From assembly GCA_002269645.1 (NCBI GenBank), contig NIVC01001484.1, positions 207,527 through 271,526 of the forward strand: a stretch of 64,000 nucleotides of DNA. The letters run 5' to 3'. Position numbers and translations under genes: made by a program. Shown piece by piece: positions 23,201-32,200 of the stretch; position 1 is the stretch's first letter, and each line of letters begins with the position of its first letter. The notes beneath the pieces were generated by a model. That model searched no databases, was not told the origin of the DNA, and saw nothing but the letters and a program-made list of their open reading frames with translations. The DNA is from Macrostomum lignano (Eukaryota).

Positions 23201-26200
23201 AGTGCCTGTTTCTAAAGCCGGTGCTAAAGCCACTGGTGCTAACGCCCTGTGGTAAAGCCCCTATTGTAACTAAATTTGGTGCTCGCACCCTCTTCAAATG
23301 CATGAAACACGGAAGGCGCGGCCTTTAATACAAACTCCTAGCCATACCGCTAAAGAAGAGAACCTTTAAGCGCCTTCTTTCTTTAAGACGTTTTTGGCAA
23401 GGACAAAGGCAGATCAGAGGGCTATTAGTGGGAAGAAAGCTTAAAATACCCAGGTTCGGTCATGGTTGAAGCAAAATCCAGATTAGAGAATCGATATTAG
23501 CGGCATTATCCTTCTATCATTGCAATTCTGTATTCGCATGATGCAGGAGATCATTGTCGCTTTAAATCACGATGCATTTCAAGTATCCTCTAATGCAGTC
23601 GCAGCCCTCTTGCTTGTGGGCAAACTTCTCTCTCTACACATGGTGGCATCTCAAGGGTGGTTGTCCTTGAGTGGCCGATCTGTTCAACAACTGATAAGGA
23701 CAAACTGTCCGAACTCGAAAGGCGAAACGGGAACAATTGAGAACTTTTTCACAAGTTGTTTTTCAACTGCCATGCCTAAAATTAACTATTTTTAATTCTT
23801 TTTAGCTCTAATGACTCAACATGTGCCTCATAGCTGGTACTTCGTATATGAAATATGACTTCCAAAATACGACGTCAGGTAGATTATTCTCTAAGCCTTT
23901 TGAGATTAAAGAAAGATTTCGCATTTGAAGATAACAGGCGTGTATTCTCTGAGCAGCAATTACCTGCCAGTAGCTTACATTGTGGCTCTAATCAATAATT
24001 GCAGCGCCATTCATAATTATCCCTTTTCCGTAATAACAGGCAGGTAGAAGTAATTGAGATTGGGCTGGCTCTAGTTTTTTTTCACCTGTCATCAGGTCCC
24101 AGTAGCTTCTGTCGTCTTCTAATTTCCTTATGTCGTTAAACCTGTTTTTCTGGATTGCGGCTGTCTCTCTGTCTCTGTCTGTCTTAGTATCTGTCTGTCT
24201 GTCTGTCTGTCTGTCTGTCGGTCTGTCTGTCTGTCTGTCTGTCTGTCTGTCTGTCTGTCTGTCTGTCTGTCTGTCTGTCTGTCTGTCTGTCTGTCTGTCT
24301 GTCTGTCTGTCTTTGTGTGTGTGTGTGTGTGTGTGTCTGTCTGTCTGTCTGTCTGTCTTAGTGTCTGTCTGTCTGTCTGTCTGTCTGTCAGTCTGTCTGT
24401 CTGTCTGTCTGTCTGTCTGTCTGTCTGTCTGTCTGTCTGTCTGTCTTTGTGTGTGTGTGTGTGTGTTAATGTCTGTGTGTTTAGTTGGACCTTTCGTCAG
24501 TATTTTTCCCTCCTTACATGGACCACCCGTTTTAACTGGACCCCTTACGTGGACCACCATATATATTTCTACATGAAATGTTAAACATGTTTTACATAGA
24601 CCTATGATGGAGTCTAGCAGAAAGCGATCGTGGTCCCTAAAGTTGCTCACTCGAAGTTCTTTTGGTTCCAAGTTACAACGGTTTCAGTTTACCTGGACCT
24701 TTTACTCGGTCCACCTAAACCGATTTTCGAGGTCCACGTAAATCGAAATTTCACATGACCCATTTTCAAAAACTGTCTGTTTGGTGTCTGTTTTGTGTCT
24801 GTTAGGTAAATTGGTAGCTAAATTTGTCGATTTGTTGTAATCGTGAAAACGTTGTTTTGCGATAAAATAACAAATTTGTAAGCAACAATATGTATAGTGG
24901 ATTTGGGGCTTGGACGACAGACGGAACTATGATATGCTATTAATTTCAAGACAATTTTTATAAAAAATCACGATATTGCATCACAGCATTGAGTCTCCTC
25001 TCCACCTTGAGCTACTAAAAATTCCTCTTAGATCGCAATTGTAAGTGATGCAACTGGCCACCTGTGCTGCAGGGAACGATGTATTTACACAATCACACAC
25101 TATGAAGTAATGATTGATAACAGGCTGTTTCGTACGAGCTATATACCTGTATCTTATTATGTCAAAGCCAAAACGAAAGCCATATTTGTATCGCTATCTT
25201 TGAAAGTCGTAGCTTATCCTAACATTTAAGTGCCTTTAACCAAATTCATTGGACGGAAAATGCAGAGTATATCGTGTGATTGGACTAAGTGAGCCGCTCT
25301 TATGCTTAAAGGAGCCTCACACTCCTTGAAAGATAGCGGCCTCCAGTGGTTCCCCTAAAACGATGTCCTGTAGCACAGACTAATCTCTACCCCCTTATTT
25401 TAGCATGACTGCTTGTCTCATTGTACACAGCAATGTACACTAGTTGTTTGCTTTTTATTAAAACAGCTGATGTCGGGAGATAAGAATTCTAGAATTTTCT
25501 GTTTCAAGACTGTACAGTGTGAATAGACACTGGCCAACCAGTGGGGTATCTCAATGGGCACTGTACATTTGCCAGCCACAGAATCTCGCTAACCAATAGG
25601 AAAAGGTCTAATGAAATTGGCGTGGGGTTGCTTGCCTATAGAAGCCTCGCAATCAGGTCCATTTAAACCCAGACTTACTAAGACCAGAGTTTATTTAGGC
25701 CCCGTTGCAATTGCAACTGCAAGTATATAGGAAGAATATCCTGTAGCAAACGGCCAAAATATTTTACTTCGAAAGGATTGAGAAGTGCTGCAAAGAGAAG
25801 TTTTTTATAAAATGGACTGGCTATCCCAGGTAAAAATTTTCAAAAAGAATTACTTCTAATTCTAAATAATATTTTACTTAACTTGTAAAAAATTTAAGGC
25901 TTTACTGCTTTTCATTTTTAACATGCTTTGTAGGAGTAAAAACACATGGGAGCCGAAAAAAATATCCCCGAGAACATACTAAAGGCTCTGCACTCTGAGT
26001 GCGGTAAGCTATACTCTACAGTCAATATCAATAGCAAACAATAGCACATTTGCATCAACAACTTATACAGTATTACATTATTTTATACATTTCAGGCAAG
26101 TGCTTCCCTAGAACAAAAGCTAAGGAAAAGTCAGTAGGTTTTGTTGTAACGTGTTATTAAAATTTCTGGTCTTTGCGCTTTACTTAAACTATGAACAAAT

Positions 26201-29200: not shown

Positions 29201-32200
29201 TCTTAATCCTAATGATAGAACAATTTGATTGCATTTTCCTGAACGTTATACAAAGTATTTTATGTAATTTAATTAATTTCATAGGTGGACTTCGTCGTCT
29301 CAATTTCAACACCTGCGAACTGTTCGGAAATGTCCATTTCGAACATATCGGCAACAGTGCAATTGCCACGGGGATGTGCGATGCAAAAAATGGCTACCGC
29401 AGCCAGTGCATATTCTGGCTTTTGCTCTGCCGATGACGATGTTGCAGAAACAAGGCTCCTCGGAATTCCAAATATCAGTCTACTAGAGGTTCGAGACTAT
29501 TTACGTGACCGCGGCTATATTGCTAGTCGAGCCGACTCAGCTAATGCGGCAGGTTCATTTGCATTAAATCACGGCAAAATCCTGTCTGGAACAGCAGTTG
29601 TTATTGGGGATGCAAGCCGTCGGGGTGGACCAATTTTTTCTGAAAATCTACAAGTGTTCGACTATTTTACTAATCCGGATTTATACGGCCTTCGAGAATC
29701 CGAGGAGCAGGATCAACGAATCCGGCAAAAAAATTCAATGTTTTGTGTTTCTTTAAAATTGTTTCCTTTACGTTAAATCGATTATTTCCAATTGCCTCGG
29801 TCTGTGTTTAACCTTAGCTGTCAGTGTTAGGTTTACGCTAAATTTGGTCTATGATTTTGAATCGGTGTGAAGGTCCACCTAAAACACGTTCTGTCGGTGT
29901 CCATATAAACCGGTCCAGTTTAAGTAATAAAAATACTGGTGCAATTTCCACTAATGAGAGCCTCTGGCAGCTTCAAAAGTAAACAAACTTTTGAAGATCT
30001 TTCGTGAACTAAAAAAAGGCTCTATTAAAAGTAAAAAAGTCGGTGGTCCATGTAATGCATTAAAACTTCTGAGGTCCAGCTAAACACACAGACACTTGTA
30101 TGTCTGTGTGTCTGTCTGTCTGTCTGTCTGTCTTAGTGTCTGTCTGTCTGTCTGTCTGTCTGTCTTTGTGTGTGTGTGTGTGTGTGTGTGTGTGTCTGTC
30201 TGTCTGTCTGTCTGTCTTAGTGTCTGTCTGTCTGTCTGTCTGTCTGTCTGTCTGTCTGTCTGTCTGTCTGTCTGTCTGTCTGTCTGTCTGTCTGTCTGTC
30301 TGTCTGTCTGTCTTTGTGTGTGTGTGTGTGTGTGTGTGTGTGTGTGTCTGTCTGTCTTTCTTAGTGTCTGTCTGTCTGTCTGTCTGTCTGTCTGTCTGTC
30401 TGTCTGTCTGTCTGTCTTAGTGTCTGTCTGTCTGTCTGTCTGTCTTTGTGTGTGTGTGTGTGTCTGTCTGTCTGTCTGTCTGTCTGTCTGTCTGTCTGTC
30501 TGTCTGTCTGTCTGTCTGTCTGTCTGTCTTAGTGTCTGTCTGTCTGTCTGTCTGTCTGTCTGTCTGTCTGTCTGTCTGTCTGTCTGTCTGTCTGTCTGTC
30601 TGTCTGTCTGTCTGTCTGTCTGTCTGTCTGTCTGTCTGTCTGTCTGTCTGTCTGTCTGTCTGTCTGTCTGTCTGTCTGTCTGTCTGTCTGTCTGTCTGTC
30701 TGTCTGTCTGTCTGTCTGTCTGTCTTAGTGTCTGTCTGTCTGTCTGTCTGTCTGTCTGTCTGTCTGTCTGTCTGTCTGTCTGTCTGTCTGTCTGTCTTTG
30801 TGTGTGTGTGTGTGTGTGTGTGTCTGTCTGTCTGTCTGTCTGTCTTAGTGTCTGTCTTAGTGTCTGTCTGTCTGTCTGTCTGTCTGTCTGTCTGTCTGTC
30901 TGTCTGTCTGTCTTTGTGTGTGTGTGTGTGTGTGTCTGTCTGTCTGTCTGTCTGTCTTAGTGTCTGTCTTAGTGTCTGTCTGTCTGTCTGTCTGTCTGTC
31001 TGTCTGTCTGTCTGTCTGTCTGTCTGTCTGTCTGTCTCTCTGTCTCTGTCTGTCTTAGTATCTGTCTGTCTGTCTGTCTGTCTGTCTGTCGGTCTGTCTG
31101 TCTGTCTGTCTGTCTGTCTGTCTGTCTGTCTGTCTGTCTGTCTGTCTGTCTGTCTGTCTGTCTGTCTGTCTGTCTGTCTGTCTGTCTGTCTGTCTGTCTG
31201 TCTGTCTGTCTGTCTGTCTGTCTGTCTGTCTGTCTGTCTGTCTGTCTGTCTGTCTGTCTGTCTGTCTGTCTGTCTGTCTGTCTGTCTGTCTGTCTGTCTG
31301 TCTGTCTGTATGTCGGTCTGTCTGTCTGTCTGTCTGTCTGTCTGTCTGTCTGTCTGTCTGTCTGTGTGTCTGTCTGTCTGTCTGTCTGTCTGTCTGTCTC
31401 AAAAGATCAACCTGGCATGCTTATTACTAAATCTTCAGTAGTTCATCTAAAGAGAGAATCAGTTACTTGATGCACTACTCAGAAACCTGACTAGCAGTAG
31501 TACATAATGCATATTTGGCTACCATTGATCCAAGAACTTGCGGCAAACTCACAGCAAGCAGCACCTCGCGCAGCCGCTCCTTGGTCAGCATGGCTGCCAC
31601 CAGCCTCGCGCTGCCGGCTGTCAGCGACCTGGCGACTTGACTGGCGTTCCCAGCTCCAGCCAGAAATGTTGAACAGGCGACCTTCTTGGCGGTGATTCTA
31701 GTGACGAAATCCTGCACCATTTGAGAGTCTGGAAGAGGTTCGTTGAAGCTTTAATTAGATTATTCGGTTCGAAGTCGTAGGTAGCTGCAATGCTCGGACT
31801 GAAAAGTTCTCAGATTACAGTGCACAGGAAGACAGGACGAAAGAGTGCTTCACCTTTTGCCAAAGGGGCTTTATGGAGACAACTCTGAGTACTGATGGGT
31901 CCGTGGACACGCTGACACAAGGTGCACAACACATTTTGGCTTTCTCATCTTCAGATACGCACACAGGGAAAAATGATTGCGCAAAATTAGTACCTTGAGT
32001 CTCATCGTAGACCAGCGCAATTTCCGTGACTTTCTCAAATTCAATTGCGGCAACAGCGGCGGCCACCTGATGCGAAATTGGCTCGCGTCCAGCCGCAACG
32101 AAATCTGAATTCGAATAGAAATCCCGTGTCAGTGTCAGTGAAATCCGAGTAAGTTTCGAAGAAATGAATAATTAAGACTCACTCGAATCGATAGCGACAT

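Follow-up and report, generated by a model that had tools for sequence, protein, structure and literature searches.

A terminal-inverted-repeat element of the flatworm Macrostomum lignano that carries a chromodomain–Dbf4 chimeric gene

A transposon-like element in a probable glutamate-receptor intron

We analysed a 64,000-nt stretch of the Macrostomum lignano genome (GenBank assembly GCA_002269645.1, contig NIVC01001484.1, forward-strand positions 207,527 to 271,526), which we refer to as the window and number from its first nucleotide. At positions 24470-30094, it contains a 5.6-kb element that is bounded by inverted repeats and probably lies within an intron of a flatworm glutamate-receptor gene. 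Our preferred reading, which we hold with moderate confidence, is that the element is a non-autonomous class II transposon with terminal inverted repeats (TIRs) that carries captured host DNA (Pack-TIR-type), the captured cargo being a chimera of a chromodomain and the part of Dbf4 that would contain motifs N and M. Dbf4 is the activator of the replication kinase Cdc7. According to this reading, the element would have inserted, in antisense orientation, into a (TGTC)n microsatellite in an intron of an ionotropic glutamate receptor (iGluR) gene. In place of a transposase it would contain host-derived genomic DNA, forming a chimeric six-exon gene that begins with a SUV39/HP1-type chromodomain, continues through a basic Ser/Arg-rich repeat linker, and ends with the N-terminal half of Dbf4, lacking the zinc finger (motif C).

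The left TIR (24470-24492, + strand; TGTCTGTGTGTTTAGTTGGACCT) and the right TIR (30072-30094, − strand; AGGTCCAGCTAAACACACAGACA) are 23 nt each and are complementary at 22 of the 23 positions, with one mismatch. Further inside is an inverted 14-nt pair, TTACATGGACCACC, whose members at 24514 and 30042 are offset from the left and right ends by 45 and 40 nt, respectively. The hexamer TGGACC was found in the left subterminal region (24470-24760, + strand) at 24486, 24519, 24537, 24550, and 24694, together with its reverse complement GGTCCA at 24708 and 24731, and the right subterminal region (29794-30094, − strand) has GGTCCA at 29872, 29912, 30045, and 30073 and no TGGACC. TGGACC has eight + strand sites in the 64-kb window, five of which fall in the element's first 225 nt, and four GGTCCA sites fall in its final 225 nt, so that the two hexamers are polarised relative to each other. 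These counts bear out an initial annotation of the window, made from the sequence without database searches, which had described 23-bp TIRs with inverted TGGACC motifs. Longer versions of the motif, GTTTAnnTGGACCT and TTAC[A/G]TGGACCACC, are repeated at both ends of the element. They are presumed to be transposase-binding sites, and the element may have moved, or may be movable in trans, through the repeated TGGACC motifs.

As a control, we listed all unique, non-repetitive inverted 14-mers spaced 0.5-10 kb apart across the window. Such pairs occurred at only three places, all of which are TIR-bounded transposon-like structures: a Tc1-like remnant at 4.2-5.4 kb, the element studied here, and a large element at 35.1-43.4 kb. 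The confinement of these 14-mers to three transposon-like structures excludes chance as the origin of the termini, which are real and typical of transposons.

The element splits one compound microsatellite. Its left flank (24161-24464; Tandem Repeats Finder, TRF, and sequence) is a compound (TGTC)n/(TG)n microsatellite, the host target, and the (TGTC)n/(TG)n microsatellite continues in the right flank (30097-31399; TRF). Both flanks are in direct orientation, which matches the expectation for an insertion. On the + strand, the sequence of the right arm is (ACAG)-like, opposite to the flanking (TGTC)n, and the arm is thus not itself part of the microsatellite. The sequences abutting the TIRs are ...GTGTTAA| on the left and |CTTGTATG... 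on the right.

When the non-array parts of the element were compared with Pfam in all six frames, using every open stretch of 28 codons or more, no transposase domain was found, in line with the initial annotation, and the other frames and the other strand gave no Pfam domain. No RNA genes were found by Rfam and tRNA scans of the region. The two neighbouring elements (35.1-43.4 kb and 4.2-5.4 kb) were rejected as partners, their termini being unrelated to those of the studied element. An 18-nt TIR pattern, searched for in metagenomes, matched 19 loci, with the partner TIR on none of the contigs, which is about the chance level. It should be noted that a family of eukaryote-looking contigs from the Joint Genome Institute (JGI; Ga0056130, Ga0056129, Ga0209680, Ga0056114, Ga0209787) has 22 consecutive nt in common with the left TIR, beside TG/TC-rich sequence, and carries TTGGACCAC at a distance of 87 nt inwards. 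In each of the two longest contigs, TGGACC is present four times, always on the matching strand, and no inverted partner was found on any contig of the family. This likeness is probably due to chance, and the family may alternatively be a distant relative.

Exon structure, reading frame, and start codon

The interior of the element contains six + strand exons separated by five canonical GT-AG introns. Exon 1 (25747-25829) encodes the start of the chromodomain; its phase-0 acceptor follows immediately after an in-frame TAG, and it has no ATG. Exon 2 (25934-26003) encodes the remainder of the chromodomain and contains a frame-breaking A7 run, and exon 3 (26096-26133) ends in a phase-0 donor, TCA|GTAGGT. 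Exon 4 (27763-28295) is made of 30/33-nt repeats and encodes the basic Ser/Arg-rich linker. Exon 5 (28932-29079) encodes a putative Dbf4 motif N (BRCT-like) and ends at an intron position conserved with M. lignano Dbf4, and exon 6 (29285-29776) covers Dbf4 from after motif N to the probable motif M, with the stop codon at 29774-29776. An AATAAA at 29926-29931 (+ strand), 150 nt past the stop and still within the element, may serve as a poly(A) signal.

As assembled, the exons sum to 1364 nt (3n+2), and the frame stops within exon 2. The break is caused by the A7 run at 25956-25962, and the addition of one A gives a single 454-codon open reading frame (ORF) over all six exons. Thus, the six + strand exons and GT-AG introns proposed in the initial annotation stand, and their phase compatibility holds only with one A added. 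Similarly, the peptide quoted there, which ended in WEPKKNI, is not encoded by the assembled sequence and needs the extra A in the A7 run, a run that had been flagged. The T6 run near 28985, which had been flagged as well, needs no correction when exon 4 is read in the Ser/Arg (SR) frame. The one-base break is either a very recent inactivation or a homopolymer assembly error.

The end of the ORF coincides with the end of the Dbf4 homology and with the start of the element's subterminal sequence: the stop codon sits in CGTTAAATCGA, which resembles the left-subterminal ACGTAAATCGA at 24735-24746. Together with the foreign N-terminal chromodomain, this matches what a captured, chimeric Pack-TIR gene should look like.

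Exons 1-5 contain no in-frame ATG, and a search further upstream gave no ATG exon that ends in a consensus phase-0 donor. The spliced leader of M. lignano terminates in ATG (PMC8629364). Since the acceptor of exon 1 is in phase 0, trans-splicing could supply the start codon, in which case the AUG of the mRNA would come from the spliced leader. Among host genes, the M. lignano Dbf4 'partial' model PAA77783.1 (7985-8001 in our locus L001, contig NIVC01000723.1) has no ATG and lies just downstream of an in-frame ttgcag acceptor. Such a start appears compatible with a start codon supplied by the spliced leader, as we propose for the window gene.

Exons 1 and 2 encode a chromodomain

The chromodomain suggested by the initial annotation was confirmed by profile search. 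The product of exons 1 and 2 matched Pfam Chromo (PF00385) with E = 3e-7 to 7e-9; the assembled frame scored 30.6 bits and the corrected frame 35.8 bits, both exceeding the gathering threshold of 25.1 bits. Its best matches in PDB were SUV39H1 (E = 3.7e-7) and HP1. The alignment with SUV39H1 runs on through the frame that follows the frameshift, showing that this frame is the ancestral one.

The window protein has the KW.GYP..NTWEP core of the HP1/SUV39-class chromodomains (PF00385), and its aromatic residues in IFYFERI (F/Y) and in KWTGY (W and Y) stand at cage positions, which makes them candidates for the methyl-lysine cage. It differs from this class in that the hairpin between strands 1 and 2 is about four residues shorter, the Pfam alignment spans only profile positions 16-42 of 53, and neither a chromoshadow nor a SET domain is present. 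A word-index search with the chromodomain found no relative having even three 5-mers in common with the window sequence.

Exons 5 and 6 encode a homologue of N-terminal Dbf4

An exhaustive phmmer search of the 212 amino acids encoded by exons 5-6 against 1.84 billion representative proteins gave exactly three matches, all of which are DBF4-type proteins of M. lignano (E = 2.7e-13, 3.5e-13, and 9.9e-9). Searches of Pfam and PDB with exons 5-6 found no BRCT or Dbf4 match, and a word-indexed search was also empty. The initial annotation had compared exon 5 with a BRCT or Dbf4 motif-N pattern. The Dbf4 part of this guess was supported by the phmmer homology, and BRCT itself went undetected by Pfam and PDB on the window protein. 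Exon 6, which had been left unassigned, is homologous to Dbf4 and forms one unit with exon 5. The cargo had also been described as chromatin-reading modules. It does not consist of two independent chromatin readers: exons 5-6 constitute a single N-terminal half of a Dbf4 homologue, running from the putative motif N to the probable motif M.

Two of the M. lignano proteins, P0002 and P0003, carry the zinc finger zf-DBF (E = 6e-16 and 4e-12), and P0001 and P0002 show sub-threshold Pfam BRCT matches (E ~1e-3) where the window protein aligns. The profile built from the alignment matches yeast and human DBF4 in PDB via the zinc finger, and it puts yeast Dbf4 residues 142-183 at the motif-N region with merely 2.7 bits. 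The window protein aligns from the motif-N region, at KSFFAYPK, to a conserved block in exon 6 that reads PAVVVTDAQHLLRPIFKDNIDVVDIF in the homologues and is the probable motif M, which binds Cdc7. The ORF stops about 20 residues ahead of the zf-DBF (motif C) of the homologues. No zf-DBF was found anywhere in the 64-kb window by tblastn with the M. lignano proteins, and the window contains no second Dbf4-like or chromodomain sequence.

When the M. lignano proteins were compared with the window by tblastn, two high-scoring segment pairs (HSPs) were obtained, whose limits coincide to the base with the donor predicted for exon 5 and the acceptor predicted for exon 6. The intron between these exons (SNQ|VDF) is at the same residue position, and in the same phase 0, as an intron of the M. 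lignano Dbf4 gene (SKQ|VDC), the remainder of which is a single exon, as in the window gene. The shared intron position shows the Dbf4 part to be related to the host gene at the DNA level and not to be a retrocopy, and it points to host genomic DNA as the source. The Dbf4 part may have been copied as DNA from a host Dbf4 gene.

Dbf4, also known as ASK or Dfp1, is the regulatory subunit of the Cdc7 kinase (Dbf4-dependent kinase, DDK). The window protein is homologous to flatworm Dbf4 from the region of the BRCT-like motif N through that of motif M, and the window gene shares the intron position with M. lignano Dbf4. It differs from Dbf4 in lacking motif C (zf-DBF), in having the N-terminal chromodomain and the Ser/Arg repeat linker, and in being just 31-38% identical to its nearest relatives. 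The zinc finger of Dbf4 is required for full kinase activation in most systems. Without motif C, the protein would be likelier to tether or compete for Cdc7 or Dbf4 partners than to fully activate the kinase.

One of the homologues, P0001 (UniRef A0A1I8JFC0, M. lignano), is named NTP_transf_2. Its first ~198 residues, covering Dbf4 motifs N-M, are identical to those of P0002, and the two diverge before the zinc finger. Thus, either M. lignano has zinc-finger-less variants of the Dbf4 N-terminus or the annotation of P0001 is chimeric.

The repeat exon and the intronic 67-bp arrays

The repeat units of exon 4 are all 30 or 33 nt long, i.e., multiples of three. All three frames of this exon are open, including the two that the initial annotation had reported as open. 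Only the SR frame leads from the phase-0 donor of exon 3 into exon 5. We rejected the Q-rich frame, as a second frameshift is required for it to reach exon 5. Among the differences between repeat units, synonymous ones were fewest in the Q-rich frame (4 of 58), and in the SR frame they amounted to 20 of 64. The differences showed no codon-position bias, and selection was not demonstrated in any frame.

Exon 4 is flanked by two intronic tandem arrays of 67-bp units detected by TRF, the first at 26312-27674 (+ strand; 20.3 copies, 96% matches) and the second, in the same orientation, at 28414-28770 (+ strand; 5.3 copies). The units start with GGGTCCAGCTAACACAC, a 17-nt near copy of the right TIR, and each consists of this TIR-like 17-mer followed by an (ACAG)-like stretch. 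The 67-bp unit looks as if it had originated from an end of the element together with its microsatellite flank.

Proposed gene capture and its alternatives

In plants, there are many well-documented cases of cut-and-paste transposons that capture genes in coding-competent form. Pack-TIRs also occur in animals, rarely, and a survey of 100 animal genomes found a few hundred mostly fragmentary captures and a single candidate functional protein family (PMC8277862). Like Pack-TIR and Pack-MULE-type transposons (an animal example is Ssk-FB4 of Drosophila; PMC8277862), the studied element has TIR ends and no transposase. Its host-gene-like interior retains an intron, indicating a DNA-level copy instead of a retrocopy, and its chimeric ORF continues into element sequence. 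However, most Pack-TIRs of animals contain only short pieces of genes, whereas the cargo of the studied element is a long chimera of several exons that is almost intact.

Several points weigh against a captured chimera. No target-site duplication was found at either boundary among direct repeats of 2-10 nt, including TA, TTAA, and TWA; slippage of the microsatellite could have erased it. Neither the element nor its 67-mer has another copy in the 64-kb window, and no partner was found there. The capture itself is read from the structure of the element only. As for the cargo, motif M is assigned from its position and sequence pattern only, and no Pfam PF08630 match was obtained. The 8 kb that precede the Dbf4 gene of M. 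lignano contain no chromodomain, which fits a chimera and is no proof of one. An AlphaFold2 model built from the three-sequence alignment was unusable (mean predicted local distance difference test, pLDDT, 34).

Captured fragments also seldom have an ORF as long as 454 codons that is near-intact and has good splice sites, and such an ORF would fit a real host gene equally well. This gene would be a lineage-specific Dbf4 paralogue, maintained by the host, that gained an N-terminal chromodomain and lost the zinc finger, and that sits between short ends of the TIR or miniature inverted-repeat transposable element (MITE) type, or in a long-immobile element. Agreeing with this are the canonical form of every splice site over the six exons of the nearly intact ORF, the exon 4 unit lengths, all of them multiples of three, and the poly(A) signal past the stop. 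In addition, the Dbf4-type genes of M. lignano number at least two, divergent from each other, besides a variant model with a common N-terminus, suggesting that Dbf4 duplicates readily in this lineage. However, the ORF ends exactly where the subterminal sequence of the element begins, with the stop in a sequence that resembles one at the other end. The 23-nt and 14-nt inverted pairs lie at matching offsets and the gene occupies the whole space between them, the gene is nested antisense inside an intron, and its frame is broken as assembled. We consider a host gene the main rival, although an unlikely one.

PIF/Harbinger elements have a second, DNA-binding ORF, and by comparison the window gene might belong, as an integral accessory gene, to a transposon family that is still undescribed, in which the transposase would be on autonomous copies and the protein would serve the element, e.g., in chromatin targeting or replication timing. 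The gene does fill the element entirely, with the possible poly(A) signal inside it, and the intronic 67-bp arrays repeat the TIR-like 17-mer, so that element sequence and gene are interleaved. Moreover, a second element 5 kb away joins a transposase-type helix-turn-helix (HTH) to a host-like enzymatic domain (UCH). However, the related proteins among the 1.84 billion representatives were Macrostomum Dbf4 only, and the chromodomain had no relative sharing even three 5-mers with it. The intron position in common with host Dbf4 argues for a host origin, and the termini of the neighbouring elements are unrelated. An accessory gene of this kind seems to us quite improbable.

The remaining alternative is that the structure arose by chance or as an assembly artefact, with repeats derived from the TG-rich low-complexity flanks and exons mis-joined or collapsed. 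The outer 10 nt of the TIR (TGTCTGTGTG) do resemble the adjoining microsatellite, the region is rich in tandem arrays, and the frame is broken at a homopolymer. However, the right arm is opposite in orientation to the flanking (TGTC)n, the inner 13 nt of the TIR are complex sequence, as are the 14-nt pair and the polarised hexamers, and the homology HSPs coincide exactly with exon borders. An artefact is thus very unlikely. The pickup of host gene DNA by the element is, in our judgement, the most likely explanation, an event of a known kind that is uncommon in animals.

The host gene and other features of the window

The iGluR gene is encoded on the minus strand. Its channel and S1 exons are at ~15.5-17.3 kb (Pfam Lig_chan, E = 7e-13; GluK5, E = 3e-17), and a likely exon of the amino-terminal domain (ATD) is at ~22.2-22.7 kb. 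Candidate signal-peptide and ATD exons are at 31.5-33.2 kb, with a sub-threshold ANF_receptor match (E = 3.8e-4). An iGluR exon in the window is 64% identical to an M. lignano protein. The antisense position of the element within an iGluR intron, as noted in the initial annotation, is probable: minus-strand exons lie on one side and candidate exons on the other, and the latter, upstream in the gene, reach a sub-threshold ANF_receptor match only.

The element at 35120-43400 is a large foldback-like transposon with a 981-aa ORF (38142-41087, minus strand), whose product contains C2H2, a sub-threshold match to the Harbinger-type HTH domain HTH_Tnp_4, and, at its C-terminus, a ubiquitin hydrolase domain (UCH, E = 2e-9). 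It has inverted arrays of 161-bp repeats at 35577-37457 and 41393-43113, and outer 211-nt inverted repeats with 97.6% identity. The structure at 4165-5380 is a short Tc1/mariner-like remnant with inverted repeats at ~4165-4280 and 5276-5380, and its ORF at 4486-4824 gave a DDE_3 match (E = 4e-6) slightly under the threshold.

The whole window is unusually dense in tetranucleotide microsatellites (TAGA, TGAC, TCTA, CTGT, AACT, ACAG) and in minisatellites with periods of 12-161 nt; TRF reported 40 rows scoring at least 150 in the 64 kb. A 560-aa ORF at 58470-60152 (+ strand) had no Pfam match. It contains 66-nt repeats (SPKRRSSQASIDKDKVQQKSSE) located between two copies of a ~70-aa module (…FHFLLRIARDEE…LQPIKAYKTPVVNFAVIHRPFL… / …AHFLMKIAKDEE…LKPIKRYHRPKVNFAVIHRSLL…).

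Implications of a chromodomain–Dbf4 fusion

In fission yeast, a natural interaction between Swi6/HP1 and Dfp1 has been described, as well as an engineered fusion of the Swi6 chromodomain to Dfp1, and the fusion suffices to bring DDK to heterochromatin and to restore early replication (summarised in PMC5295031). Like this construct, the window gene joins an HP1-type chromodomain physically to Dbf4. It differs from it in that the yeast construct contains full-length Dfp1, whereas the window protein is without the zinc finger.

The protein of the window gene, if made, would put the Dbf4 N/M module on methyl-lysine chromatin. The full proposal is that a natural chromodomain–Dbf4 fusion in a mobile element is expressed via spliced-leader trans-splicing and places a module that binds Cdc7 or Dbf4 partners on H3K9/K27-methylated chromatin. 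We regard it as speculative and improbable. If the frameshift is real and the element is single-copy, the gene would merely be a young chimeric pseudogene.

If the proposal were true, the window gene would be a natural counterpart of the engineered Swi6-chromodomain–Dfp1 tether, and the element, or the host after co-option, could alter replication timing, cohesion, or silencing of heterochromatic repeats. The fusion would hard-wire the HP1–Dbf4 connection that recruits DDK to fission yeast heterochromatin (PMC5295031). A near-intact chimeric ORF in a flatworm TIR element would also add a clear animal case of exon shuffling by DNA transposons and, if expressed, would allow DDK regulation targeted to chromatin to be studied, as a natural experiment, in a lineage that serves as a regeneration model.

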